Shown piece by piece: positions 1-42,381 of a stretch of 64,000 bases of DNA (position 1 is its first letter; every line of letters begins with the position of its first letter). Position numbers and translations under genes: made by a program. Location: the IMG/VR virus record IMGVR_UViG_3300042868_009074, positions 124,001 through 188,000 of that record, one strand, 5' to 3'. The notes beneath the pieces were generated by a model that saw only the letters and a list, made by a program, of their open reading frames with translations, did no database searches and had not been told where the DNA came from.

Positions 1-2335
1 TATTTAAAAATGAATCCCAAATTCCTCTAGACGAAGCATTTATTTGTGTATCTAACTTTTCTGCATTGCTTCTAAAATCAGAAATATCTGGTGTAAATAT
101 TTTAGTTTGGGTCTCAGCTGGAACAAAAAAGCTTATATTACTTCCGTCTGTCCACTCTTTGTAAACGTTTGTAACAAAAACATCTTGATCGCTATAGCCT
201 ATGACTTCCGGATCTGCAGGAGAGATAGCTTCCATAGCGTTTCGGATAGCAAGTGTAGTATTCAGTCCCGCTCCAGTACTTGAAGGATTTGTGTAGTTTC
301 CTTCTGGTGGAGTTGTTGAATCTGTAGTATCAGTTGGTTTTTTTAGTAAAAACTCTTCGTTAACATAGTTATGAAGTTGGCCTGCAGCTTTACCCATATA
401 TTGTCTATATCTACCCCAGTTAATTGACTGATTAAAATCGTTGATCATAGGCAGAAAAGGCTTGTGATTAAAGTTTGACATTTGCAGAGTAACCGCCAAA
501 CCAAAAGGATAGTTTTCTATAGTTTCGATTATCATGTCGTTTAATGCAACACCTGTAATGCCATGAACTGAATTTAGATAATGATTTTTAATAGGTATAA
601 TTGGAGAATATTTAAAAGCTGCAACCATGCCTCTTAGCGATGAAAGAAATTTATCTATTTGATCTTCATTCCCTGTTTGCTTAAAGTCAATTTTGTAATT
701 ATCTTTTAGATTAATCTTAGAAGCATCTTTGATCGATATGCCCCATATTTCCTCATAGTTGGGGAAGTATAGTTTCATGGATATTTGAACGTGCTTATAC
801 CCGGCGTTATACTTGGCTGATGTTCTTTGTCTAAGACCTTGTTCTCCAAGTGAGGAAATCTTGAATGTAGTCCCTACATCTATTTTGATTGGTGGTACGT
901 AGAAGTTAGCAGCGCCTAATCTTAGGTGAAATACGTCTGGGGATTTAGGAGCTATGTTTTGTCTAAATGGAGATTCTTCTAAAGCTTTTCTAATCCTTTG
1001 TGCGGTATTAACTAATTCCCATGCACCAGTAAATATGCTCTCTCCGTTAACTTGACCAAATGAGGCGACTAAGTCTTTTAGGATAGCTTCTGGGTCATTC
1101 TGGGAATCTTCAACTCCTCCACCAGCTCCATTGTTAGAGTAATCACCAGCAATTGCGAGAGCTTCAAAGAAGAAATTAATTAAATCAGGAAAGTAATTAT
1201 AAAGAGTAGCCATTACAACTGGTTGTCTAGAGAGCACAGAAAGAGTCACCCCTAATTGCTGCAACCATACAGTGTCTCTAGTGCCGTTAACTATATTTCC
1301 TGCACTTGCTTTAACCGTATTTTCATTTCTAAATCTGTCTCTACCGAATTGTCTTATTTCGTCAGAATGAACTAATAGATCCAATAAACCACTTGCTTCC
1401 ATCTGTTGGAATAGTATTTTTTGGTACTTAGAGTCTAGCGCTGTAAGTGTGGCTCCATCTCTTGGTGAAAGTATTTTTTGGAAAACATCATAACCACTAA
1501 GATCTGATAGAACTTGATCAGCTTGTATAAATATGTTATTTTTTCTAGCGATAGTTGCGTATAAGCCACCAACTGCACCATCTGTTGAGTTGTACAACTC
1601 TGGGCTAAGACTGACAAGATAATTCTCTAAAAACGCTATCCTTGATAGATAATTTTCATCAGAATCAAAAACTGGATTAACAGTAGTATCTGTATTATCT
1701 GTAGGTGGATTATTAGCTCCAGGATTAGGTGAGATTTTAGTTTCACCTGATAATGTTTTAGTAACTGGATCCCATTGTCTTAATCTTATAATTGCGTATT
1801 TAACAAATACACTTAAAGATATATAGTTACCAAATAAAGAAAGACCGTTACCCATAGAGGGAGACCTGTCAGTGCCATCTTTATCTTTATTGTAATAATT
1901 GGTCCAAGCAATGTTTGCTGCTCCATCTTTTTGATCTAGATTTGCATTTGGAGAAAGATTGTTATAAAAGTTCTTTCTTAAAAAAGCAACTATTTGTGCG
2001 TCTGTAGCTTTTGAGCTATAGCCACTAGGAGTCATTGGAGCTAAGTAAGAAGCTGCTTCTTTTCTACAAAGCACCCAAAGAGGATCATCAGCATCCGGGA
2101 GAATGGCACTCTCTAGCGCCGGCATTTCGTCCAAATACCAGTAGTGGCTCTCTTTATCTACGTACTGCTGGCTATATGTTCCCTGTTTTACAAATAAAGA
2201 ATAAGTAATTGGCCTGACAAGATAATCTTTCATCTTTATATATGCAAGATTAACTTCTTCTATATAGTCGTCAACTGATTCTTTAGTTGGAAAATTGTCT
2301 TCTAACCAAGCTATAATTTTTGGATTAACTGCCAT
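1..2335 (-). CDS. Large virion/baseplate-region protein, 3' end runs off the window (partial)
   Basis: ATG at 2335 (MAVNPKIIAWLEDNF...); spot checks show an open frame down to position 1 with no stop, which is why the ORF track omits it. It follows the tape-measure-like genes. Confidence 0.6.
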   Translation of the reverse strand, partial: MAVNPKIIAWLEDNFPTKESVDDYIEEVNLAYIKMKDYLVRPITYSLFVKQGTYSQQYVDKESHYWYLDEMPALESAILPDADDPLWVLCRKEAASYLAPMTPSGYSSKATDAQIVAFLRKNFYNNLSPNANLDQKDGAANIAWTNYYNKDKDGTDRSPSMGNGLSLFGNYISLSVFVKYAIIRLRQWDPVTKTLSGETKISPNPGANNPPTDNTDTTVNPVFDSDENYLSRIAFLENYLVSLSPELYNSTDGAVGGLYATIARKNNIFIQADQVLSDLSGYDVFQKILSPRDGATLTALDSKYQKILFQQMEASGLLDLLVHSDEIRQFGRDRFRNENTVKASAGNIVNGTRDTVWLQQLGVTLSVLSRQPVVMATLYNYFPDLINFFFEALAIAGDYSNNGAGGGVEDSQNDPEAILKDLVASFGQVNGESIFTGAWELVNTAQRIRKALEESPFRQNIAPKSPDVFHLRLGAANFYVPPIKIDVGTTFKISSLGEQGLRQRTSAKYNAGYKHVQISMKLYFPNYEEIWGISIKDASKINLKDNYKIDFKQTGNEDQIDKFLSSLRGMVAAFKYSPIIPIKNHYLNSVHGITGVALNDMIIETIENYPFGLAVTLQMSNFNHKPFLPMINDFNQSINWGRYRQYMGKAAGQLHNYVNEEFLLKKPTDTTDSTTPPEGNYTNPSSTGAGLNTTLAIRNAMEAISPADPEVIGYSDQDVFVTNVYKEWTDGSNISFFVPAETQTKIFTPDISDFRSNAEKLDTQINASSRGIWDSFLN

Positions 2336-2345
2336 ATAATATCAC

Positions 2346-2810
2346 TTACTTAAAATAGTTATCGGTTTTTAACATTTTATCCATAGCGGATTTAGTGTTA
2401 TTGGAAAAAGAAAGTTTACTGTAATTATCTATTGTACCACGTTTTGAAGTACTAGAAGTAAAACTCATTGAAGAAACTTTGCCTACACTAGGAGCTTTTC
2501 CTTTTGAACTAGCTATTCTATTTCTTGCTTGTTGATGCTTTGGATTATCGTATCCTGCTTTGTTCATCTGAACATGAGTTGTTGATGAATTTATATATCC
2601 TTCAAGAGAAGGTTTACTAACTTTAGCCTGAGACTTCTGTTCTTGTTGTTTTAATTGTTGATCTCTAGAGCCAACATTAAAATTATCTTGACTTTGAGGA
2701 CCGGAGACTTTTTGAGCATTAGCTTGAGCTTGTTTTACCCTAGGCCTTGTATCCGGGTTGCTTTTTGCAGCGTCGGCCAAGCGGGAATTGGATTGTTGAA
2801 TATTGTCCAT
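2346..2810 (-). CDS. Hypothetical protein (Gln/Ser/Lys-rich)
   Basis: 154-aa ORF tightly packed between neighbouring genes. Confidence 0.6.
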   Translation of the reverse strand: MDNIQQSNSRLADAAKSNPDTRPRVKQAQANAQKVSGPQSQDNFNVGSRDQQLKQQEQKSQAKVSKPSLEGYINSSTTHVQMNKAGYDNPKHQQARNRIASSKGKAPSVGKVSSMSFTSSTSKRGTIDNYSKLSFSNNTKSAMDKMLKTDNYFK

Positions 2811-2820
2811 TACCTATTTC

Positions 2821-5800
2821 CTAATAAGAACTTGCAATTTCTTGATACGGGTCTTTACCCGCATTAGGTATGCCAGAGTATATAGTAGCGTTTGAACCAG
2901 ATTCTGATATGCTTTGAGAAGCATTAATAAACTGTTGGACCTGTGCTTGAGAGCCCACTATGTCTACGCTATAGGATGATCCTAGGTCTCCATTTGACGT
3001 CGGGGAAAAGGATGGGTATTCCATTGTCTCAGTAGTAGGTCTTTCGTATGGGCTTCCACCAGGCAAGAGAGGCGGTCCAGCCACGCCCTCTGCAGTATGA
3101 TCTCTACTCTTCATCTTATTAAATACAGCACCTCCTAGTGCTGCTATTCCTAACCCTACAGCTATTTTAGTTTTATTACCTTTTGCGTAATTGAGGAAAT
3201 TAGGAAATTTTTCAGATAGTGCATCGCCTATCTTTGTATACTTAGGACCCGTTAAATCAGCCATTGTTCCTGCTGCTGTCCCTACCTCGTCAGATAGATA
3301 TCTTGCTGCTATATCGTTAAAAACTGGTATAGGATTTCTTAAATCTTGTTCAAAAAGACTTAAAACGTCTAAAGCCTCTTGAGAAGTAGATACTCTTCTG
3401 GCTTCAAATCTTGACCCCATTAAAGCTAACTGATTTATATATTGGTTATGCTCTGGTAAAGAGTTCAGGTTAGCAACCGGACCAACTCCATCGGCCATTG
3501 ATTGATCAACTAGATCTTTTCTAATTAGAGATAAGGTTGTATCTTTATCTTGAGAATACATTAATTGAGTAAAGTGTTCTAGTTTTTTAGCCTGTTGTTG
3601 GTCGACTGTTTCTGCTGTTTCCAACATTGTTTCTTCTATGAGGTCTCTAAGTGATCTTCCTTTCACGTCTCCGTGTTTAGCTGTAAGATCAGGAAATATA
3701 TCTTGTAAATTGTCGTCAACAAACCCACCTCGTTCAGTAAGTCCTGCTTCTGGTGAGTGGTTTCCTTCTGGACGCAGTATTTCTTGTAGTCTTTTTGCAA
3801 CGGAATCTTCTGCGCTTGCTGCTCGCTCTCCGGCTGATTCTTCTAATTTTACAATTAAAGAATTAAAAATTTCCTCATCCCCAGCAACTGATTTACTAAC
3901 TTTATTTACTAAATCTGACTTTACAGCTTCGTAAGCTTTTCCTAATTGTATTCTTCCAGTTTTATCAAAAAAGTGCTCGCCCCTAAGAAGGGCATCATCC
4001 ATTAGTTTTCCAAGAGTCCTTGTATCAGCATCTTCTGATGCTATTAATCTTTGTGATTCTATATAATAATGTTCTAGCAGACTTCTTGCATCTACTGGAC
4101 TTTCGATTGATGTTAACTGTTTTTCTAAATGATTATAGATCAAAGCCCTTGCTGCTGCTTCGTACTGTTCTCTTTGTCTCATTAGTTCAGCTTGAACATA
4201 TCCAAGTTTGTCTGACGGAGAATGGAAAGCAGCTATCATATCTCCTAAGCCACCTTTTATTAGACCTTTTACTTCTTCATTTATATTATAGCTACCAAAA
4301 TTCAAGTTATTAGTTACAGCTCTAATTTGAGAATTTAATTCTCCTATTTCTTTAACTAAATTTGTTTCTACTATTTCTTCTCCAATTTTTAAGTCTACTT
4401 TTTTTAACAAATTTAGATCTGTTAATTCAATTAATGAACGGTCTACATTTGCGTCTCTACCAGCTTGAGATTTTGCTTTTAACATTTCAGAAAAAGCTGT
4501 ATCACCAGTTCTTTGAATTTTTAACTTATCTTTTATACCTCCAAATTCTGATGCCGCTTCTTCAAGGGTGGAGCTTCTGTATCTTGCTAATAGATCCTCT
4601 CCTTTATAGGCTAATCCAAACCTCTTATCTCCTAACATTGTATTAATTGCTCTTTGTTGCACCTTTTCATATGTTTCACCTTCATCAAAATTTGGTTTAC
4701 TTTTAAATTCTTTAAGGCTAGCCCTAATGAAATTATAAAAATCTTCAGTTTCTTTAGTCGCAGCATCTGGTCCATACCTTTTTAAGTATGCCCTGCTTCC
4801 TTGTAGTATTCCTTGTAGAAATTCTTCAACGTCTTTTGAGTTAGAACCTTTTGCCCTAAATACCAATTCATCCATTCCCATTCTTAAAAATTCATCAGTT
4901 CCAAGCTGTCCAGAGTGAAAAGCCATTCTCATCTTTCCAAATTCTACTCCAGTTTGACGTATCATGTTTTTTGAAATTGCAGCGCTTTGCGCGTTTACTG
5001 CTTCCATTATTTTAGCCCTTTTACCAGGGTCCATAAGTGCTGCGGTAAAATCTTCTATTCCTTCGTATTCTTCTAAAACTCTTGTCGCCTTTGAATCAAA
5101 AAGAGATCTCCAATTTTTATCATATCCATCTAGTTGGGTTCCAACAAGTTCTTCTTTTAAGTCATCTACATTCAGATTGTACAATTGAAAAAATGCTTTA
5201 GCAGTTGAATCTTCTATATTTACTCCTTGAGTTGTTTCAAAGTACCTTTGATTTTTAACAACCTCTTCAAACAATTGAGTCATTTGTATTTTAGCATTTC
5301 CTCCAATTGCTGCGTCAATTGCAGATTCAGGGTCATACGCAAAAAAGTGAGATTTAAAGAAATCAACATCGTCAGGAGTCATTGTGCTACTCTTTAATAT
5401 GTCATCCATTTGTCTTTCAAACGAAGTAGTAAATCCCAATGTGTCAATATAAGAACCAAGACTTCCAGCTTTTTGAGTAGTAGCTTGTTCAGCCAACCTA
5501 GTCTTAAGATGCATCATCTCTTCCAGTATTGAATTTCCTATTTTTGTATTATCTGATCTAACGCCAAGACTTGCTAGATAATGTGCAGTAGTAGTCTCAG
5601 AGAAACCTAAAGCTTTGCCGTCAATTTGTAATTCATTATAAAATTTAGCGTGCTCTGCAAAAGTTGCTCCTGGCGGTAGAAAATCATTATCGAATACCCC
5701 TTTTGATCTATTTGAGTCAACAATATTTCTCATTGCGTCAACAAATCCTTGATCTTCCGATATTGTTAAGGATGAATTTTGGATTTGTATTCTTCTACTA

Positions 5801-8800
5801 TTTCTATAAGCAGCTAATTTACTAGGATCATCTGCAAAGTCAGCTTCTGTTAATTGTCTAGCAGTAGACATCCTTATACCAGTCTTTGGATCTACTACTG
5901 TTTTTGCTATAAGATTTTCACTAAGTTCGTTGATGAGCCCTTTACCTGGTCCATAAACACCTGGTCCTAACTTTGATCTTTCTGAAACTCTAATAATCAT
6001 GTCTTCAATTACATCATCGCTAATATATCCATTTTCACCATTTCTATATATGTCAGCAAGTGCCATATTATTTCTAGATATAGCGTTAAGATACCTAACT
6101 GCCCTGAAATCTTCAGCTTCTCTTGCTGATAGACGTGATAGTGATGTAGATAAAGTAGTTTCAAAACCATCTTTAGTTTTATTGCTGTAGAGTAAGTTAA
6201 TCCCAGTTGATTGATCCATTTGTTCGCTAAAGGACATTAACGCTTCTCTAAAGTTTTCCCCCAGTTGATCTTGCCCTCCAAACATTCTAGCAATTGTCTT
6301 ATTGTCCATTTGAGGTGCTAATATAGAAAATTCTTCCGGACCAGTCGGCTGTCTAAATGAAAAAGCAACTAATCTTCTTCTTGCAGTGCCATCACGACCT
6401 ATTTCGTTTGAATTTATATAATGAAGATCTGTAATAAATTTGTCGTCTAAGTCGAATCCACCTTTTGCTTCATAGAGTTCATCTAGAGTAGAACCGCCAA
6501 CCACGATCTTATGATCATCGTGTCTATACTTTGGCATTCTTAGTATTTCTCCACTATTTGCTAATGATATTTCTCTATGTGCATTTTGGTTAAGAAGAAG
6601 TGTATCTTCCGCTCTTCTACCAACTCCAATTGTTTCAGCAAATGATCTGTTTTTTTCTATTTCAGAATGTTTTAACCCACGTCCTATTAGGTTTTCTTCC
6701 GTATCAACCGCATGTCTTTGAGCGTTTGGCAGTACAACTGCATTGATATCTCTTTTTATTGCTTGTCCGTCTGCGCCTACTCCGGACTTATATTGTTTAC
6801 CTTTTCTAAATACTTCTTTAGAAGAAGTTTCAATTATCTTATTTAAAAGCTCAGGAAGTTCTGTTGGTCTTGCACCATTTCTTATGGCTGTTTGTATTTC
6901 AAGAGCATCTTGTCTATATCTCATAGCCATTGATCTTGATTGAAAACCTAATTGTTCAAAATCATCTGGATTTAAAGAAGCTTGTCTTTCTATACTTCTT
7001 AAGATAGATTCAGGAACTACTCCAGTATCTTTCATTGTTTTTATCTCAGCGCTAAATTGAGACATGTTTTCTCTAACTTGATCAACTAATTGTTGATTGC
7101 TATATACTTCAGGATGGAATATGGAAGCTTGAAAATCGCTAAAAACTCTTTCTCCAGGAAAATGCCTAGCAGAGTCTAATGATATATATTGCCCAGAAAC
7201 ACCTGCTTCTCCAAAGAGAGACCAATTTGCTCTACCAAAGTTTGTTTCTCTTTTAAATAGTTCTTTTGAACCAAATCCTATAACACCAAGATCATCAGAG
7301 ACATGGCTTATATCTCTAACGTCTAAAACTGCCTTTACTCCACCTTGAGATAATCCAATTCTTGCAGTTAAGTCATCATGTGATTCTGCTATTTTTTGAG
7401 TTGCGCTTTTTACATCAGCTAGTCTTTTCTTTACGTGATCTATTCCGTATCCATCTCCAAAAATTCTAGCTATCTCAGCTTCTCCGGCTGCTGCATCAGA
7501 TTTATGTGTTGATATAATAGCTTCTAATTCTCCAATTTCAATTCGATTAGCATGTAGCTTATGCTTTACCGCAAAATCAGCAAGTACTCCTGAACCGTCA
7601 TATACTCTTTCTCCATCTCTAAGTTTTTGTACAATGCGGCCTAATTTATTATGACTTAATCCAGCTGCATTACTTAGCCCATCCATATTAGGACCCTGTG
7701 TTTTGGAAAGATTTTCTAAATGTTCGATGAAATCATCAAGCTTAAATCCTGCACCTCCTTTATCAGATGCATAATATTTTTTTAATTCCTCACCTAAAGA
7801 TTCAAATTCAAATTCACCTACACCGGCTACTTTTAATATACCTCTGATTGATTCAGCTGATACATTAAGCTCATCTTGCCCTACGCCTTTTATTATTCTT
7901 AAATTTGCAGTTAAAGAAAGTTCATTCTTTGCATTTGCAGATATTGATTTTTCCGTAAAATCTTCAAATAAACTTTTTCCATTATCTAATTTAAAAGCTT
8001 CTAATAATCTAGATTCAGTAAAATCTGTTTTTATAAATAAATCATCTAATGTTTTAGGAAGAGCATCTAGTGACTCTAGTCTTTTGTATAATTCTGGATT
8101 ATTAGTTTTAATTTTTTCAATAGCTGCTTCTATTAACGTGTCTACTTTATCTCCTGCTAAGGAAAAATCTCTTGAAGATGTTGAAGCGGAAATTCTTTTG
8201 TCTAATTTTTGGAAAAGTCCACCCAATTGTTGTAATGGATTATAGTTAATGAGAGAATCCATATTATCTGATAATATAGCTGGATTTGCTAATCCTATTT
8301 TCATCATAGCAGAACGGGAAACAGCTTCACCTCCCATTGCGACGCTAAGCTTCGCGTACTGAGCTTGAGTTAAATAAGTAATAGCACCGTCTTCGTTAAT
8401 GAACCTATACCTTAATGCCACTGCATTGTTATCTCTCGTAGTTAAGAAACCAAAAGTACTTTCATTTTCATTTAAAGCGCCTGTTAAAGAAATTTCTGGA
8501 AGAGGTATATGCTTAGGTTCAGCTCCTCCTGTGGTGTAAGCTGGATTTAATATCCTAGCTTCTTCTCTTTGCAGATCATGAAGTTCTTTTAATTTTATTC
8601 TCAAACCTTTTGGCACGTTGTCGTCAGTATATTGAATAGCAGATTGCCCGTGTATTATATTATTGATATCAGAGTAGGCAAGTCTTTCAACCTCTATTCT
8701 TCTTCCTCTTAATGAACTGAGTCCAGCATCTTCTAATACTTGTTGCATTAGGGTGTTTGAAGATGATCTTTCTAAAAATTCATTTATTACATTAGTCTGA

Positions 8801-9036
8801 CCTAAATGCTCGTAGCCAAATGGGTCCAGAGCTGAACCTGCTAAAATTTGAGCTTCATTTACTCCCAATTGGGCAGTATGGACATAGGCTTGCCCTAAGC
8901 CCTCTTCTGTTAGGTCGTACAACCTTCCGGTAACTGAAGATTTAATCTTAAAATCACTACCAATTTTAACTCTAGATAAAAGACCTCTTTGGAAGTAAGG
9001 ACCGTCCATCGATGAAAGATATTCATTCATGTCCAT
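2821..9036 (-). CDS. Giant virion protein (2071 aa); candidate two-barrel RNA-polymerase-like domain plus tape-measure-like C-terminal part
   Basis: Intact 6.2 kb ORF directly after the tape measure. Motifs R559...GGVK568AVL, ELFK595, GGFD862LD864D865K and FR895QPT; hydrophobic Gly/Ala segment near the C-terminus (IAVGLGIAALGGAVF). Confidence 0.6.
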   Translation of the reverse strand: MDMNEYLSSMDGPYFQRGLLSRVKIGSDFKIKSSVTGRLYDLTEEGLGQAYVHTAQLGVNEAQILAGSALDPFGYEHLGQTNVINEFLERSSSNTLMQQVLEDAGLSSLRGRRIEVERLAYSDINNIIHGQSAIQYTDDNVPKGLRIKLKELHDLQREEARILNPAYTTGGAEPKHIPLPEISLTGALNENESTFGFLTTRDNNAVALRYRFINEDGAITYLTQAQYAKLSVAMGGEAVSRSAMMKIGLANPAILSDNMDSLINYNPLQQLGGLFQKLDKRISASTSSRDFSLAGDKVDTLIEAAIEKIKTNNPELYKRLESLDALPKTLDDLFIKTDFTESRLLEAFKLDNGKSLFEDFTEKSISANAKNELSLTANLRIIKGVGQDELNVSAESIRGILKVAGVGEFEFESLGEELKKYYASDKGGAGFKLDDFIEHLENLSKTQGPNMDGLSNAAGLSHNKLGRIVQKLRDGERVYDGSGVLADFAVKHKLHANRIEIGELEAIISTHKSDAAAGEAEIARIFGDGYGIDHVKKRLADVKSATQKIAESHDDLTARIGLSQGGVKAVLDVRDISHVSDDLGVIGFGSKELFKRETNFGRANWSLFGEAGVSGQYISLDSARHFPGERVFSDFQASIFHPEVYSNQQLVDQVRENMSQFSAEIKTMKDTGVVPESILRSIERQASLNPDDFEQLGFQSRSMAMRYRQDALEIQTAIRNGARPTELPELLNKIIETSSKEVFRKGKQYKSGVGADGQAIKRDINAVVLPNAQRHAVDTEENLIGRGLKHSEIEKNRSFAETIGVGRRAEDTLLLNQNAHREISLANSGEILRMPKYRHDDHKIVVGGSTLDELYEAKGGFDLDDKFITDLHYINSNEIGRDGTARRRLVAFSFRQPTGPEEFSILAPQMDNKTIARMFGGQDQLGENFREALMSFSEQMDQSTGINLLYSNKTKDGFETTLSTSLSRLSAREAEDFRAVRYLNAISRNNMALADIYRNGENGYISDDVIEDMIIRVSERSKLGPGVYGPGKGLINELSENLIAKTVVDPKTGIRMSTARQLTEADFADDPSKLAAYRNSRRIQIQNSSLTISEDQGFVDAMRNIVDSNRSKGVFDNDFLPPGATFAEHAKFYNELQIDGKALGFSETTTAHYLASLGVRSDNTKIGNSILEEMMHLKTRLAEQATTQKAGSLGSYIDTLGFTTSFERQMDDILKSSTMTPDDVDFFKSHFFAYDPESAIDAAIGGNAKIQMTQLFEEVVKNQRYFETTQGVNIEDSTAKAFFQLYNLNVDDLKEELVGTQLDGYDKNWRSLFDSKATRVLEEYEGIEDFTAALMDPGKRAKIMEAVNAQSAAISKNMIRQTGVEFGKMRMAFHSGQLGTDEFLRMGMDELVFRAKGSNSKDVEEFLQGILQGSRAYLKRYGPDAATKETEDFYNFIRASLKEFKSKPNFDEGETYEKVQQRAINTMLGDKRFGLAYKGEDLLARYRSSTLEEAASEFGGIKDKLKIQRTGDTAFSEMLKAKSQAGRDANVDRSLIELTDLNLLKKVDLKIGEEIVETNLVKEIGELNSQIRAVTNNLNFGSYNINEEVKGLIKGGLGDMIAAFHSPSDKLGYVQAELMRQREQYEAAARALIYNHLEKQLTSIESPVDARSLLEHYYIESQRLIASEDADTRTLGKLMDDALLRGEHFFDKTGRIQLGKAYEAVKSDLVNKVSKSVAGDEEIFNSLIVKLEESAGERAASAEDSVAKRLQEILRPEGNHSPEAGLTERGGFVDDNLQDIFPDLTAKHGDVKGRSLRDLIEETMLETAETVDQQQAKKLEHFTQLMYSQDKDTTLSLIRKDLVDQSMADGVGPVANLNSLPEHNQYINQLALMGSRFEARRVSTSQEALDVLSLFEQDLRNPIPVFNDIAARYLSDEVGTAAGTMADLTGPKYTKIGDALSEKFPNFLNYAKGNKTKIAVGLGIAALGGAVFNKMKSRDHTAEGVAGPPLLPGGSPYERPTTETMEYPSFSPTSNGDLGSSYSVDIVGSQAQVQQFINASQSISESGSNATIYSGIPNAGKDPYQEIASSY

Positions 9037-9038
9037 CT

Positions 9039-12000
9039 TTATCTAACTCCTGCTTTTATATTTACGGATCCAGATCCTGAATAAGATCTAGACTCAGATA
9101 TGGTCCCGTTAATTCCTTGGTCATACATTAAACTTTGAAGTCTATTTTTGACATCCTGTGAATTTCCCATTTTTCTACCGTTGCCAAATTCTGGATAACT
9201 AGGATTTGTTAAATTTGCTTCTTTGATCTGTTGTGGATAGTAACCCATTTGCGACATCTCTAGACCCATTGATTGTCCCATTTTTATCTTTACATGTTCC
9301 ATATTTGTATTTGGGTGCCAACCTTCCCAATCTTTACCTGGAAGTTCATGAGTTTGGAAATATTCAGTTAGATCTGGTTTTCTTTCTACTGGCATTCCCC
9401 AAGCAGCTTCGTATATTCTTCTCTCTAGTCTTCCTGCAGTTGACAAAATTCTTTTTCTTTCGCCGGCAGGAGCTTGTATCATTGCTTTAAAATGATCTCT
9501 TTTTCTTTTTGGAATACCAGCAGCTAGTGTGTCTACTGAAGTGCTGTCAAGATCTGTGCCATACATGGTCTTCTTGCTTGCTGCCATGTATTGCTTAGCA
9601 GCTTCGACATCACCAGATTGGGCTGCTCTAGAAGCTGCTGTTCTATTTTTTGTATAAGTTAAAATATCAGAATATTCTTCTAGCGCTAATTCCTTTTTTC
9701 TTTGCATAGGGATAAATCTACGTTCAGACAATTTACTAAAAGCAGAAAAACCACCAACAGTTAAAGCACCTATCGCAGTAGCGCCTGCCTTTGCAGCTTT
9801 TCCTTTCACAAATTGTCTAAAAGCAAAACCACCAACAGCTGCAGCAAGAAGCGGATTTCTTTGTGTTCCCTTGTAGTAGATAGGCTGAACAAAACTTTCT
9901 ACAGGTCTTTGCCATTCTGGAAACGTAGAACCATAAATATGTCTTCTTTCGTAGTCTTCAGTAGCATTTTTTCTTCCTGTAAACTTGTTATTAATAAAGT
10001 TGTCAGTATGAAGAGCAGCGTTTTTTGCAGTTGAGAATGGGTTAAGAGCTTTGTCCGTAAAGCTACTATCGTCGTAAGCGGTAAAGTTATTTTTACTATT
10101 TTTTATAGCGTTTTGTTGCGCTCTAATCTCGGCAACTTTTTCTCTCTCTTCTTCAGATAAACCTATCTTATCAATTCTTCTTTCTAGGTTTCTGTATTCT
10201 TTAGAGTATGGGGCAACGTCTGCTAGTATGTCTAATTGATTAACTGCTCCATATCTACCATTTCTATCTGGATATAATTTATTTAGCCTTTCATAGCCAA
10301 TACCAGGTAATCTCATTTCTCCTTCTGCAACTTTTGTAAAAGGATCGCCTGTTGTAAAGTCTATAAAGTTTTCACTTCCCGGCAAGAATGGATATTTTTT
10401 ACCCATAGTATTCTTAATTGGGTTAAGCATATTGACAGTTGTTCTTTTACGTGGAACAAATCTTCTTGCTATTTCTGATAGTTCAATATTTCCAAGTGGA
10501 CCTTCTGCTGGCAACGGTAAATCGCCCATACCTCCAAGGTTTAAGTCCCAGAATGCCCTAGTTGTGCCGTATGCCTCAGAAGCTGATTGCAGAACCGGTT
10601 TATCTGGCTCAAAATCGTATGCTCCCATTCCTAAAGATCTTCTAACATTACCTTCCATGAAACCATATATACCAGCAGTTTCTTGAAGCTTATATGCAAG
10701 ATCTCCCTTTAGATAATCGTTAGATCCGCTTCTTATCGGCAATCCAGATGCCACTATCTTTTCTGGCATCATCATAGGGCCTACAGGAGGCCCGTATACG
10801 CCCCCTGAGCTGCCTCCTGAGCGTGTAGAGATAGATTGGGCTAGAGATGGACTACCGAGCTGCAAATAGCCGTTAGAAGAGCTATTACCTGGTCCTGAGT
10901 TTCTAGATAAAGCTATGTTTGAAGAAGATAATTGATTTCTAACAGAATTACCAGCAGAATAAGTAGCACCAGCTGAACTTGCGTACATCGCATTAGATTT
11001 TGAAGATACTGTACTTTCAGATCCTTGGTATGATCCAGAAAAAAATGCAGTTGTAGGTATATTCCTAAGAGGTTTTCTTGGGATATTTGGTGGTGGAGCA
11101 GCTGCATAAGAAATTTGAGGATTTGGTGCTATATCAGCTTGTCGAAATATCCTTTGCTGTTGAGGAAGATACGCTCCGCCTTGGCCTGCCGGGACGTATG
11201 ATGCTAGGGCTGCATCAACTTCTTCTTTATGCATTACCTTCTGTGGTTTAAGTATTTTTCCAACAGTCATGTTTAACGCTGGAGTTAAGGGACCAAAAGG
11301 ACCACTAAAGTATTCTCCAGTTAAAGGATATGGCCTATCTTCATAATGCTTTCTTTCAAATCTATATGGGTCTAATGGTCTTAGCGGTGAGAAGTCATTG
11401 TAGAAAGCTGCTTTTTCAATTGGGCTACCAAACGCCTCGGGTGTAAACGTAGGGGCAGATTGCATTCTCCTGTACCACGATGGCCTGAAGTATTGTATCT
11501 TTCCACCCTTAAAAGGAGTATTACCTAACGCCCACCATCTGCCTTGTCTTACGGCTGTTTCGCCTTTTAGAAGTTGATCTTTTTTCTCTTTGCGATTCAT
11601 TCCACCAGGAGTAACCCCTGACATTATAGATCTTGCTTCAACTCCGACTCTAGCTGCCCCACCAAGAACAAGAGGAGAATAAACCCTTTCTCCTCTATCA
11701 TCTTTTGGATTGACCATTCCACCAGCAGTTCTATCTACTGTTAAGGCAGCTGTTCCAATTGCTAAAGCTGGAAGAACTCTTTGGCCAACAAGACCTGCTG
11801 AAAACATCGAAACTGGTCCGCTATAGGCGTTCATATCGGTGCCTGCGCCTACTGTGCCAAAGTATCTATTCAGTCTTCCAAAACCATGAGACATTGGAAC
11901 TGAGGCAAAAGAAAAACCTTCTTCGTTACCATATGTTCCTATTCCACTTGCGCTTAATAGGGTCTTTACAGGGCTTCTATTAAGTGCTGTTTTAAATGTT

Positions 12001-25802: not shown

Positions 25803-26609
25803 TTAAAGGGAATAATTTTTTGTATTTAATCTATTCCTGTAATCAGAGTTTAAGTTTGGCATCCAGTATTTATATTCACTCTCTTGCCCGACTAACTCTT
25901 CTCGGTCAAAAGATGTACCATAACAAGCTATGCTCAAGTAGGCGTATCTCTGACCTGCTGAGACCGGAAGGACTTCATGTCTACCAATATAACTAGAAGG
26001 ATATATTGCCACTGAGCCCGCTTTTGGTTTCCATACCGTTGGTATATTTGGAAAATGTAATTCTCCGCCAGTATAATTATAGTCGTTTAATTGATCTTCT
26101 GTTTCTACGCAGTCATTTAAGTACAAGTTAATACTAGAGCTATTATGCATTGATACCTGACTACCGGTTGGTTTACCCCATTCGTAAGGGACTTGATCGT
26201 CGCAGTGTTGACCTATTCCTTGCCCGTTTTTATATCCGGCTATGTGACCGTTAGGTCTCCACCAAGAAGTTCCTGCTGCGTCCGGAAAATAACAACAGTA
26301 TTCTACAAGAGCATCATAGATTGCATCTTCTAGTGAATCTATAAAATCTATGTACTTCTGGGGAGCTTCAATGCCTAACTGATTGCCTTTTGTGTCTAAG
26401 AATCTTTCAGGTGCTTTTGCTATATCTGATAAATTAAATTTAAAACCAGTTTTATTAGTGGCGTACTTAATCCCATCTTCTTCATGGTAGGTAAAAGTAC
26501 TTTCTTCATTTTTACGCATCCAACTCATATACTCAAAAAGAAGATCTTGATCTATATTGATTACATTATCAATTATGACCACGCCCATTCCGATGTGTTT
26601 TGATTCCAC
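25803..26609 (-). CDS. 2OG-Fe(II) oxygenase (prolyl-4-hydroxylase-like)
   Basis: HCD...GGELHF...HEV...RY facial triad and 2OG-binding Arg. Confidence 0.85.
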   Translation of the reverse strand: MESKHIGMGVVIIDNVINIDQDLLFEYMSWMRKNEESTFTYHEEDGIKYATNKTGFKFNLSDIAKAPERFLDTKGNQLGIEAPQKYIDFIDSLEDAIYDALVEYCCYFPDAAGTSWWRPNGHIAGYKNGQGIGQHCDDQVPYEWGKPTGSQVSMHNSSSINLYLNDCVETEDQLNDYNYTGGELHFPNIPTVWKPKAGSVAIYPSSYIGRHEVLPVSAGQRYAYLSIACYGTSFDREELVGQESEYKYWMPNLNSDYRNRLNTKNYSL

Positions 26610-26617
26610 GATGTTCC

Positions 26618-27508
26618 TTAGTAGTTGGATTTAGTTATGTAGAATTGAGGAGAATCTTCTTTGTATCCAGATTCTAATAAGTGATTTTTTAGATCTTCTC
26701 TCAGCGTCGGCATATACACATTGGTAGATTTTTTTGATAACTCGGGATCTTTTAATGGGTCTGACACGTATTCATGCACTTCTTGATTAGGAGTCCCTTG
26801 GCTATACCATCCAAGATAACTGTATCTAAATCCCTCTATTACAGGTTTAACTTCATGAGCAGCCATGTAATTGGATGGAAAGAGTAGTACGTCTCCTTTT
26901 TTGGGAGAATAATCTATATCTAAATAATTAAAATAATGATGACCACCCATGTAATTGTTTCCATCTAATTCTTCTTCATTGTCAACGGAATCATTAAAGT
27001 ATACTAAAATACTAATTACATTTCTTAAAGCTAACTGATCTTTTGGTTCCAATACATCGTAAATATAATCAGCACTAGTATCTGAATGAGAACCAAGGTA
27101 AACATTTTTTGGGTATTGAAGAATATGACCTTTGACTTTCCACCATACACATTTGTATGCTAATGGAAATAACTCAAAGTATTGTAGCAAACATTTATCT
27201 TTTGAAGATTCTATAAAAGATAAGAGGTTACGAAGATCATCACTATCACTATAATGGATAGCGCTAGCTCTTTTGGGCATTTGATCTATACTGCTTTTGT
27301 TGAAAAAATAACCACTCTTATTTACATATATTTCTTCGTTAGTTTCAGGGTTAAGTCCAGGAGTGTACATCTCATTCCACTCTTCTTGGATTAGCTCATC
27401 AGATTTCTTGAGTAGATTAACCCAATCTAAGCTTAAGCAATTCTCAAATACTACTACTCCACCACCTAAGTGTTTTGGTTTTACTTTATTAAATATCATT
27501 TTTTTCAA
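26618..27508 (-). CDS. 2OG-Fe(II) oxygenase (prolyl-4-hydroxylase-like)
   Basis: HSD...YMGG...AHEV...RY. Confidence 0.85.
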   Translation of the reverse strand: MKKMIFNKVKPKHLGGGVVVFENCLSLDWVNLLKKSDELIQEEWNEMYTPGLNPETNEEIYVNKSGYFFNKSSIDQMPKRASAIHYSDSDDLRNLLSFIESSKDKCLLQYFELFPLAYKCVWWKVKGHILQYPKNVYLGSHSDTSADYIYDVLEPKDQLALRNVISILVYFNDSVDNEEELDGNNYMGGHHYFNYLDIDYSPKKGDVLLFPSNYMAAHEVKPVIEGFRYSYLGWYSQGTPNQEVHEYVSDPLKDPELSKKSTNVYMPTLREDLKNHLLESGYKEDSPQFYITKSNY

Positions 27509-40026: not shown

Positions 40027-42381
40027 CTAAGCTTGCAAGTCGCCCAAGGCTACCCAAGTATCAGTAGCTCTCTTGATTAACGTGACAGAAGACCATTGAG
40101 CTCTTAAGTTAGCTCGGTTTGCTGTGCCTTGCGGTGTAGCATTTAACGTTACGCCTGCAGTTACTACAATGCTTGTAGCTCCTGCTCCTGTTTGAAGAAC
40201 TGTAATTTGACTTCCAATTGGAAAGGCTACTGATGCATTTGTTGGGATTGTTACTGTATTAGCTGAAGCAACACTCATTTCAATCATGTCATCTTTGTCA
40301 TTTAACACTAATGTGTAACTAGCAGTTTGTGCATTTGTTATAACATTAGAAGAAGCAAAGTCTAATGATATTGTTCCATTACCAACTTGTAATTTTTTAT
40401 TAGTAGTATCCCAAGAAAGTCTTGCATCTGTAGTAGATGAACTAGTGGAAAGGGTTAGAGTTGGACTATTCGTTACTGGACTTGTAAAAGTTTTGTTTGT
40501 AAATGTTTCGGTTCCTGCAAGGGTTGCTAATGTGCCAGTAGTTGGAAGAGTTACCGATGTTGTACCAGTTGCAGTCAATGTAGTTGCAAATGCACCTGAA
40601 GTGGTAAAGTTTCCACCAAAAGTAAGAGTCTTACTTGCATTAACTATAAGGTTCCCAGTTATAGTTGTTGTTGATCCACTATTACCAATATTTATTGCAG
40701 TAGCATAAGCATTACCTACGCCTACTGATCCGACTGATGTACTTCCATAACCACCATCAATTGATACACTTCCACCATTGTTAGTTGCTCCGCCAGAAGC
40801 ACTCCCTCCATACAGAGCTGCTGGACCACCAGATACTACCCCTGTTCCTACGGCGTCGGCTCCTGCTACACTGACATATGGAGCTGACTGATTTCCTGAT
40901 CCATTTAAGTTATTAGGTTTAATCATCAGAGTTCCATAAACTGCACCACTTGTTGTTATTTGTGAGCCACCGCTTTGTCTGCCAACTACGGTTAAGATAT
41001 TATTTATTGTTGTTGCTCCGGTTGCAGCACCAATGTTGAGTGCCGTTGCTGCACCTGCAAAGTTTATAGTTGTTTGACCAACATTCAGCAAGGTAAAGGT
41101 AGAACTTAGGCTATTTAACGAGGTTTCAATAGTTGGACTTGTTAAAGTTTTATTAGTAAAAGTTTCAGTTCCTGCGAGTGTTGCTAATGTACCGGTCTCT
41201 GGCAGTGTTATGCTAGTGTTGTCTGTAGTTGCAAGTGTGGTTGAATAAGCGCCGTCTTCTGTAGTAATTGTAAAGTTTCCGCCAAGAGTAATAGTTTTAT
41301 CATAATTGACCCAATTGGTTCCATTGTATCTTAGCATTTGCCCAATTGATGATGATGTTATTACGGTGTCGGAAAGATCATTTAATACTGCTGAACCAAG
41401 ACTTCCAGTCGGACCAGTCGGACCAGTCGGACCAGTCGGACCAGTAATGCCAACCTCGCCCTGTAAACCAGCAAGGGACACAGCCGCAGAGCTAAAAGAA
41501 CCTTCACCTGCTTCATAGTCAGAATAAACACTGAAACTAGTGTCTTGAACAAGGGCTGTAATTTCACCGGTAATATATCCTGATGCTGCATTGACTTTTA
41601 CGTGATTACCTAAAGCAAAAGCTCCAGTGTTAGCGGAAGTGAATACATAGGTAGTGCCAATAGTTCCATCAATGGAAGTTGCACATGATGCAGTAACTCC
41701 AGCATAAGCGCGTCCTGTAGAACCCGTAGGCCCTGTAGGCCCTGTAGGCCCTGTTGGACCAGTCAACCCAGTATCCCCAGTTGGGCCAGTTGGACCGGTG
41801 TCTCCAGTAGGGCCAGTTGGGCCTGGAGCACCTTCTGCTCCATTTATCCCATTTAATCCATTTATTCCAGGTTCTCCTTGTGGTCCGGTAGGGCCTGGAG
41901 CACCTTCTGCACCAGGCATACCTGGAGCACCTTCTGCTCCTGTAGGACCAGTATCCCCCATGGGTCCGGTAGGGCCGGTAGGACCGACCTCAAGGCCTGC
42001 TACGGCTATATAAACCGATATCCTGACTGAGTTAGAAGCTGGGGCAGAATCAAAATAAACTGTGATAGTGTTACTAGATGTAGCTTCCCAAGAAGTTAAT
42101 ATTAAACCATATGGAGAAGCTGCTTCTCTAACGGTTACACTTACATCTCTGCTTCCAAAATTATGGGTAAGAACAAATGAAGTACTGGTTCCATCTCCTA
42201 CAGTTGCATTATAAACTGTGCCAGCTAAGCTAACTGCACTAGTGAATTCTACAATAGCATTAGAGCTATTCTTGTAAAATATTTTTCCATCAGCGTAGTT
42301 TAACGCCAATTCACCATGATCCAGCGTTGTAGGAGCCTGAGTTGGAGTTGCTGATCTTTTTATTTTAATAGTGTTAGCCAT
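40027..42381 (-). CDS. Collagen-repeat tail fibre/virion fibre protein
   Basis: [10 protein letters not shown]...GELALN fibre-type N-terminus; Gly-X-Y (GPT, GAP) tracts; duplicated [20 protein letters not shown] segment. Confidence 0.75.
41401..41990 (-). repeat. Collagen-like Gly-Pro-Thr / Gly-X-Y coding repeats (two tracts)
   Basis: 9-nt tandem units (gtcggacca, gtaggccct) encoding (GPT)n at ~41401-41445 and ~41713-41990. Confidence 0.85.

Follow-up and report, generated by a model that had tools for sequence, protein, structure and literature searches.

A candidate two-barrel polymerase core with a shortened DxDD loop in a giant tail-block protein of large uncultured phages

Twenty-three families of two-barrel polymerases have been counted so far, and the virion enzyme of the Thermus phage P23-45 transcribes under the direction of an AT-rich promoter motif (PMC10770324). 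Jumbo phages are reported to encode no RNA polymerase, with the exception of the phiKZ-like phages and two carriers of YonO (PMC7824862). In the eukaryotic enzyme QDE-1, the roles of R738, K743, K767 and D709 have been described (PMC9508822), and the connectors of QDE-1 and of gp66 from the crAss-like phage phi14:2 comprise about 130-140 residues (gp66 preprint). In QDE-1, Pol II and E. coli beta', the Asp loop is preceded at a distance of 33-45 residues by the Pro-gate, an RxP motif that in QDE-1 reads the 2'-OH. In this study we analysed a stretch of 64,000 nucleotides of viral DNA, hereafter the window, which corresponds to positions 124001-188000 of the 267,766-bp record IMGVR_UViG_3300042868_009074. 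We focus on a giant protein of 2071 amino acids (aa), encoded on the minus strand within a run of giant open reading frames (ORFs). This protein and its free-standing paralogues probably represent a new, very divergent family of two-barrel polymerases, with a giant (probably virion) form and a free form.

The initial annotation of this DNA, made from the letters alone, had read the 2071-aa protein as a candidate virion RNA polymerase, either ejected and divergent or permuted, or else degenerate. All the motif positions it gave were exact in the translated ORF. The motifs and conserved blocks are listed below in window coordinates; conservation here and throughout refers to alignments of 94-108 homologues with a mean column identity of 16%.

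2821-9036, minus strand: ORF of the 2071-aa giant protein with the polymerase-like core
8170-8208, minus strand: basic motif K277-x-x-K280-R281 ... R289, conserved at 100, 100, 100 and 94%; the paralogue counterpart is K116-x-x-K119-R120
7594-7599, minus strand: D480-G481 in 'YDGSG', conserved at 98 and 95%
7324-7362, minus strand: RIGLSQGGVKAVL, residues 559-571
7252-7281, minus strand: IGFGSKELFK, residues 586-595
Residues 832-835 of the same protein: LRMP
6439-6462, minus strand: putative metal-binding loop G859-G-F-D862-L-D864-D865-K866 (GGFDLDDK), with G859 and the three Asp invariant
6319-6369, minus strand: VAFSFRQPTGPEEFSIL, residues 890-906
6331-6354, minus strand: R895-Q-P897-T-G-P-E-E902, invariant, at the end of the hairpin after the Asp loop
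5314-5460, minus strand: conserved block L1193-G-x-Y-x-N ... S1205, Q1209, E1237, D1241 (99%)
2824-3240, minus strand: C-terminal module, residues 1933-2071, with a near-invariant GPPLLPGGSxYE at 1987-1998

In the 2071-aa protein, D.DD was seen once against about 0.7 expected from its composition, R.P three times against about 3, and GG.K twice against about 0.8. Each pattern occurred at chance frequency, so the motifs picked out by eye prove nothing by themselves. It is their conservation that makes them credible. The protein had no match in PHROG, Pfam, PDB sequences or INPHARED (GenBank phages). A word-indexed search returned eight relatives, and an exhaustive search of 1.84 billion representatives (E below 0.001) gave 108 family clusters at 50% identity. 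Most of their members were 1100-2100 aa long and matched at about residues 400-850.

Among the homologues, G859, D862, D864, D865, R895, P897 and E902 were invariant. R559 was conserved in 91-97%, K568 in 84-97% and K595 in 88-90%; R774 and R838 reached 99% and 83%, and V631, P728, F861, L863 and Q896 were at about 90% or more. Conservation was thus found for every residue that the initial annotation had singled out (K568, K595, D862, D864, D865 and R895). An invariant Asp triad accompanied by many invariant Arg and Lys residues, at 16% identity, points to a metal- and phosphate-handling active site. Because these residues are invariant, a degenerate polymerase is unlikely. The two checks that the initial annotation had set as able to refute it, on residue conservation and on the predicted fold, were both carried out and did not refute it, and its interpretation is supported in part. 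Two RxP motifs had also been pointed out. The downstream RQP proved to be invariant, and the upstream LRMP was not conserved in the family. The RQP stretch resembles a Pro-gate but follows the Asp loop, whereas a Pro-gate precedes it. By analogy with D249 of YonO (in 'DGCG') and D709 of QDE-1, D480 is a candidate for the fourth acidic residue of the first barrel.

Conservation also extends beyond the putative core, to the block listed above, to a further one at residues 1363-1402 and to the C-terminal module. The latter is preceded by a Gly/Ala-rich hydrophobic stretch and keeps conserved aromatic residues to the last position. A signal for assembly or for insertion into a membrane is one possible role.

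We searched the ORFs of the genome with a hidden Markov model (HMM) of the giant family, using hmmsearch, and found two free-standing paralogues, both outside the window. One is an 843-aa ORF at record positions 1543-4074 (E 4.9e-5) and the other is an 847-aa ORF at 210228-212771. They are 53% identical, occupy equivalent positions in two collinear ends of the record and lie among small plus-strand genes, away from the tail block. Both copies carry KxxKR, R-x8-KG, K-x-E, V..D.Q, GGxDxDD and RSPNGxGE. The DG motif was present in the 843-aa copy only, and D171-G172 is invariant in the paralogue family. In addition to the downstream RSPNG, both copies have RIPIPC 58 residues before the Asp loop. 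Alignment of the giant and paralogue families by hhalign gave a probability of 74% (P = 2.8e-5) over 257 columns. It paired R559, K568 and K595 with R225, K234 and K257, and the Asp and RxP loops were aligned as well.

The 843-aa family comprises more than 231 clusters at 90% identity, of about 845 aa and all unannotated, and we found no match to it in Pfam, PHROG, PDB or GenBank phages. When compared by ESM Atlas features, the 843-aa copy fell among clusters of RNA-dependent RNA polymerases (RdRPs), with top scores of 0.94 and 180-186 shared features. Sixty-four of its 100 hits were in sets carrying PF05183, and eukaryotic RdRP clusters shared 170-172 features with it and scored 0.91-0.92. 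The structural neighbours of the rank-2 hit were clusters with an RdRP domain, at template modelling (TM) scores of 0.6-0.68. By the tool's own calibration this result is a lead, although a consistent one. A free-standing paralogue with RdRP-like language-model features adds support to the polymerase reading.

The giant core was encoded on 114 IMG/VR contigs. Co-occurrence was surveyed in nine large related records of 169-210 kb, two of them with terminal repeats. The giant gene and a full-length paralogue of about 845 aa were found together in eight of the nine. In the ninth, an 84%-complete fragment, the sole match was weaker (E 1.3e-7) and came from an open frame of 918 aa. Matches of this weaker kind occurred in G001-G005 and G007, six of the nine records, where the open frames measured 804-918 aa. 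Reading two of these records directly (G003 at 111500-118000 and G004 at 55500-59500) revealed a third clade of 792-793 aa with GGDDLDD or GGWDLDD, so that these phages have three genes of the superfamily. We did not find this clade in the genome of the present record. The GGxDxDD signature is family-wide, and none of its three Asp residues varies in the giant, the 845-aa or the 793-aa clade.

The two ends of the present record (1-50.6 kb and 208.0-267.7 kb) are collinear, with DNA identity of only 66-91%. The record probably combines two related phages, as a concatemer or chimera, and the true genome would measure about 208 kb. Related phages of 206-210 kb with terminal repeats are of comparable size. 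We also observed that tRNA-like k-mers (AGCTCAGTTGG) recur between genes across the whole record, which suggests several tRNA genes.

The predicted structure was derived from two AlphaFold models that showed the same elements, one of residues 500-1010, with a predicted local distance difference test score (pLDDT) of 84 and a predicted TM score of 0.78, and the other of residues 545-925. After three helices at residues 501-551, the models contain the following parts.

7252-7362, minus strand: first-barrel-like segment, a beta hairpin with R559 on one strand and K568 on the other, followed by K595
6817-7134, minus strand: helical connector, residues 635-740 (about 105 residues), between two beta regions, pLDDT above 90
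6307-6810, minus strand: second, catalytic-barrel-like beta domain, residues 743-910, of six strands and two helices, including R774 and R838

At the level of sequence and model, the conserved basic residues of a first barrel are present, the surroundings of the residues named by the initial annotation are predicted to be beta-rich, and a connector-type helical region is predicted with high confidence. The stretch with K595 is ill-defined, at pLDDT 50-80. In the second domain, G859-K866 forms a loop that joins the helix 848-857 to a long strand, and R895 terminates the strand after the Asp-loop strand. The DFDGD loop of E. coli beta' has the same helix-loop-strand arrangement. Further helices, at residues 924-944 and beyond, follow the beta domain, and the conserved blocks at 1193-1241 and 1363-1402 come later still, on the side where two-barrel polymerases have their bridge helix and trigger loop; no element could be assigned to either.

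VIA, a search independent of Foldseek, matched the connector with many short helical segments. Beyond a length of 200 residues, each run matched nothing but the two-barrel polymerases QDE-1 and RDR2, and the QDE-1 alignment extended to QDE-1 residues 1024-1026. Two entries named 'RNA-dependent RNA polymerase' were found among the AFDB clusters, the better at a probability of 0.75 and a TM score of 0.32. The scores of the QDE-1, RDR2 and AFDB matches were all within the noise range stated for the tool; what appears notable in the fold match is its length and repeatability, not its score. With ungapped offsets, K743 and K767 of QDE-1 come to within 1-2 residues of K568 and K595, and D1007-D1011 to within a few residues of D862-D865; the helical region coincides with the QDE-1 connector (793-919). 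Chains of the RNA polymerase large subunits of M. tuberculosis and cyanobacteria appeared in Foldseek at E 0.3-1 and were not counted as evidence. Matches to the giant-protein model in the ESM Atlas shape search were all unrelated.

We also examined the transcription context. No Rpb1_2 or Rpb2_6 RNA polymerase domain of Pfam was found in the genome, and neither sigma-70 region 2 nor HSP70 was detected in the whole record. A search for T7-type RNA polymerase (PF00940) had no hit here; it was silent in every control genome too and is therefore uninformative. The phage is probably not among the 'moraphages' (PMC12619734), since neither HSP70 nor a sigma factor was detected. Outside the window, at 198.7-204.2 kb of the record on the plus strand, about 25-30 near-identical promoter-like units stand before small genes. 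A unit consists of a GC hairpin, TATATATCTTTAAAT, 0-3 bases, TATAGTG, about 10 bases, a ribosome-binding site and a small ORF. Its 13-mer core had 14 exact and several one-mismatch copies in the array, compared with 2-3 for a reversed control, and the conserved block of the units spans the would-be spacer of a sigma-70 promoter. The units fit candidate early promoters of a phage-specific polymerase, with no observed tie to the 2071-aa protein.

Taken together, we judge it rather probable that the giant protein has a homologous two-barrel core and a role in transcription, and hold homology to two-barrel polymerases, taken separately, to be somewhat more probable. There is about an even chance that these genes form an unrecognised lineage of two-barrel RNA polymerases in uncultured contractile-tailed phages of about 200 kb, characterised by a GGxDxDD loop with RxPxGxxE after it and by paralogues of about 2000 aa, about 845 aa and sometimes about 793 aa.

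Several results weigh against this interpretation. There is no D.D.D anywhere in the 2071-aa protein, and the DxDD loop is one residue shorter than the universal DxDxD. The giant family has no conserved RxP upstream of the Asp loop, the invariant RQP being 30 residues downstream. As neither a DxDxD nor a conserved upstream RxP was found, the protein was not filed in any described family. The profile of the giant family produced only coiled-coil noise against PDB. With hhalign, the giant, paralogue and merged profiles had no significant match to YonO or to the family of crAss gp66, whose profile was built from 120 homologues. The best local match to gp66 (P = 0.03, not significant) was collinear and inside the gp66 Connector domain. 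Even at E up to 10, the PF05183 HMM found neither the giant protein nor its 843-aa paralogue, nor any of 39 homologues of the latter. The first barrel was only partly modelled, at low pLDDT, and D480 is outside both modelled ranges. Foldseek returned nothing significant from PDB, with either model, or from the Swiss-Prot part of AFDB. ESM Atlas feature searches do not recognise the giant core. Finally, the promoter-like motif was not enriched in four related genomes.

The alternative that survives best, which we nevertheless consider unlikely, is some other metal-dependent enzyme on a tail-lumen or ejection protein, which might attack host nucleic acid (as a nuclease or phosphodiesterase) or, as a cell-wall hydrolase of barrel type, aid penetration, with a coincidental likeness to RdRPs. 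The fold matches are weak, no HMM or profile ties the family to polymerases, and DxDD differs from the polymerase signature. Lytic and nuclease domains are common in giant tail proteins, the 3799-aa neighbour of the giant protein is partly endolysin-like, and the Atlas features of the giant core lean weakly to tape-measure proteins (weak hits to tape-measure clusters, 0.53-0.82). However, no lytic transglycosylase, MltA/RlpA-like or nuclease structure was among the matches, and invariant Arg and Lys residues with an Asp triad fit nucleotide rather than glycan chemistry. The free 845-aa paralogue, moreover, is outside the tail block and RdRP-like to the language model, and the motifs follow one another as in YonO and QDE-1. 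A lytic transglycosylase of the double-psi beta-barrel (DPBB) type was considered separately as the best reading and rejected, no such structure having been matched and the invariant Arg/Lys set being unsuited to it.

It is less likely still that the core is a true two-barrel enzyme other than a DNA-dependent transcriptase, namely an RNA-dependent enzyme, a primase-like or DNA polymerase (cf. archaeal PolD) or a non-templated maker of short oligonucleotides. The nearest structures are RdRPs with dual template use (PMC9508822), and a short DxDD loop together with a moved RxP could alter the choice of sugar or template. The characterised phage members of the clade (YonO, crAss gp66 and P23-45 gp96/gp64), however, are all DNA-dependent RNA polymerases, and the pairing of a giant and a free protein suits a scheme of virion and non-virion transcription. 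Very improbable is a module without catalytic function that serves a tape-measure-like protein structurally or by binding metal, its residues being conserved for folding or assembly. It would agree with a long, largely helical protein in the tail block that has a conserved C-terminal module and a weak tape-measure-like feature signal. Active sites, however, typically show what is seen here, an invariant Asp triad with invariant Arg, Pro and Glu against 16% background identity, and the same residues are retained in the free paralogues, which are not tail proteins.

Under the polymerase interpretation, residues of about 270-960 would constitute a two-barrel nucleotidyl-transferase module in a single chain, of the QDE-1, YonO and crAss gp66 kind but very divergent. 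Its first half would run from the KxxKR basic patch through D480-G481, a helical insert and the R559/K568 hairpin to K595. The second half would consist of the helical connector of about 105 residues and a six-stranded barrel with the invariant R895-Q-P-x-G-x-x-E902. The barrel with R559, K568 and K595 would bind the product and the phosphates of the nucleoside triphosphates, and the GGFD862-L-D864-D865-K loop of the six-stranded barrel would bind the catalytic Mg2+. The relocated RxP may reflect a permuted pseudo-symmetric barrel or a second loop with another role, or it may be a sign that the resemblance is partial. The giant protein would be packaged in the virion, leave with the DNA and transcribe the first genes; the free paralogue of about 845 aa would be made after infection and transcribe later genes, as in the gp96/gp64 pair of P23-45. 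As to packaging, the gene is located between the sheath and tail genes on one side and the endolysin-like 3799-aa protein and virion proteins on the other, and this synteny is conserved.

Nearly all genes of the window are on the minus strand. The genes that give the giant gene its context are the following.

51433-53151: portal
19885-21171, minus strand: tail sheath gene, the marker of a contractile-tail module that lies upstream of the giant genes
9039-15980, minus strand: 2313-aa ORF, upstream of the 2071-aa ORF and kept as a family neighbour in distant relatives
2346-2810, minus strand: 154-aa ORF, downstream, a conserved neighbour of 144-153 aa in relatives
1-2335, minus strand: C-terminal end of the 3799-aa ORF (full ORF at record positions 114936-126335)

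With the tail fibre genes that are also in the window, the portal and the sheath indicate a contractile-tailed phage. The sheath gene is followed by five small ORFs and then by the run of giant ORFs (2313 aa, 2071 aa, the 154-aa ORF and 3799 aa), so the first after the small post-sheath genes is the 2313-aa ORF, not the 2071-aa one. The trio of an ORF of about 2200-2300 aa, a family member and an ORF of about 150 aa was retained on other contigs around distant homologues. We compared the 2313-aa and 2071-aa proteins as possible paralogues and rejected the idea. The initial annotation had put the giant protein next to the tape measure; no tape measure protein (TMP) family of Pfam or PHROG was hit by either of the two, and the 2313-aa protein matched nothing else in Pfam, PHROG or PDB. 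Several stretches of the 3799-aa protein, among them residues of about 1447-1722, matched PHROG 20474 'endolysin' at E 2e-119, and the protein also has two long hydrophobic segments rich in Gly and Ala. The true tape measure of this tail, or the protein that pierces the cell wall, may be this one. The large ORFs beyond it match virion structural PHROGs.

Some other features of the structural block were observed. Two adjoining ORFs just after the sheath gene (254 and 229 aa; window 18287-19051 and 19143-19832, minus strand) match only the first 165 or so positions of PHROG 9206 'major head protein'. By their position they look like duplicated tail-tube-like genes, or else the PHROG 9206 label is misleading. 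Tandem ORFs at 25803-26609 and 26618-27508 (minus strand), inside the structural block, had weak matches to 2-oxoglutarate (2OG)-Fe(II) oxygenase and DNA endonuclease PHROGs. A 784-aa tail-fibre protein (40027-42381, minus strand) had collagen-like repeat matches at residues of about 130-250.

We found no description of the giant-protein family in the literature searched. If the polymerase interpretation is true, widespread uncultured large phages carry a pair of virion and non-virion polymerases that HMM libraries do not see, and large phages scored in surveys as lacking an RNA polymerase would be independent of host transcription. A phage group without a recognisable RNA polymerase may thus bring one and make another of its own. 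One more lineage would be added to the 23 two-barrel families, and the 'universal' DxDxD loop would be able to shrink to DxDD. The family would also be a natural case of a Pro-gate-like RxP transferred across the catalytic loop, which bears on the evolution of double-psi barrels by duplication and permutation.

Among known systems, QDE-1 and RDR2 (eukaryotic RNA- and DNA-dependent polymerases, PF05183) are the only long structural matches to the giant core. The order of R738, K743 and K767 in QDE-1 corresponds to that of R559, K568 and K595, the helical connector is of similar length, and the Asp loop comes after a helix in both. However, QDE-1 has DxDGD where DxDD is found here, and its spacing from R to K is 4 rather than 8. 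A helical insert of about 55 residues separates D480 from R559 in the giant protein, and the Pro-gate RxP of QDE-1 is 45 residues before the Asp loop, whereas the invariant RQP here is 30 residues after it.

YonO of the Bacillus prophage SPbeta has 839 aa, close to the 843-847 aa of the free paralogue. According to the SPbeta record, its motifs come in the order seen in the present family, as D249-G-C-G, R266-x4-K271-G, K297-E, R492-S-P and D535-x-D-x-D-K. Its RSP, in contrast, lies 43 residues before the DNDGD, and the profiles did not match significantly. The virion RNA polymerase of N4 is a functional analogue: giant and ejected, it uses phage-specific promoters to transcribe early genes (PMC13434306). 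Its fold, an unrelated T7-like right hand, sets it apart (PMC7824862).

Closer in protein architecture is gp66 of the Cellulophaga crAss-like phage phi14:2 (PDB 6VR4), a 2180-aa virion protein with an internal single-chain two-barrel core and large flanking unknown domains, whose gene is beside other genes for giant virion proteins. Locally, its GSDFDIDK resembles the GGFDLDDK found here. It differs in having a DFDID loop with an upstream YRIP, and, as mentioned above, the profile similarity was not significant. Moreover, crAss-like phages are podoviruses of about 100 kb, whereas the present phage is contractile-tailed and of about 208 kb. A free-standing paralogue was not reported for phi14:2 in the literature examined, whereas the present phage has one.

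The arrangement of genes is most readily compared with gp96 and gp64 of Thermus phage P23-45, two paralogous two-barrel enzymes of which one is part of a giant tail-associated protein and the other is free. The polymerase of gp96 has a DxDxD and is N-terminal in a proven siphovirus tape measure. The core described here is internal (about 270-960) with a DxDD, and the 2071-aa protein had no hit to a TMP family. If it is a polymerase, it would be the third independent case of a two-barrel polymerase in a giant ejected protein, after crAss gp66 and P23-45 gp96.

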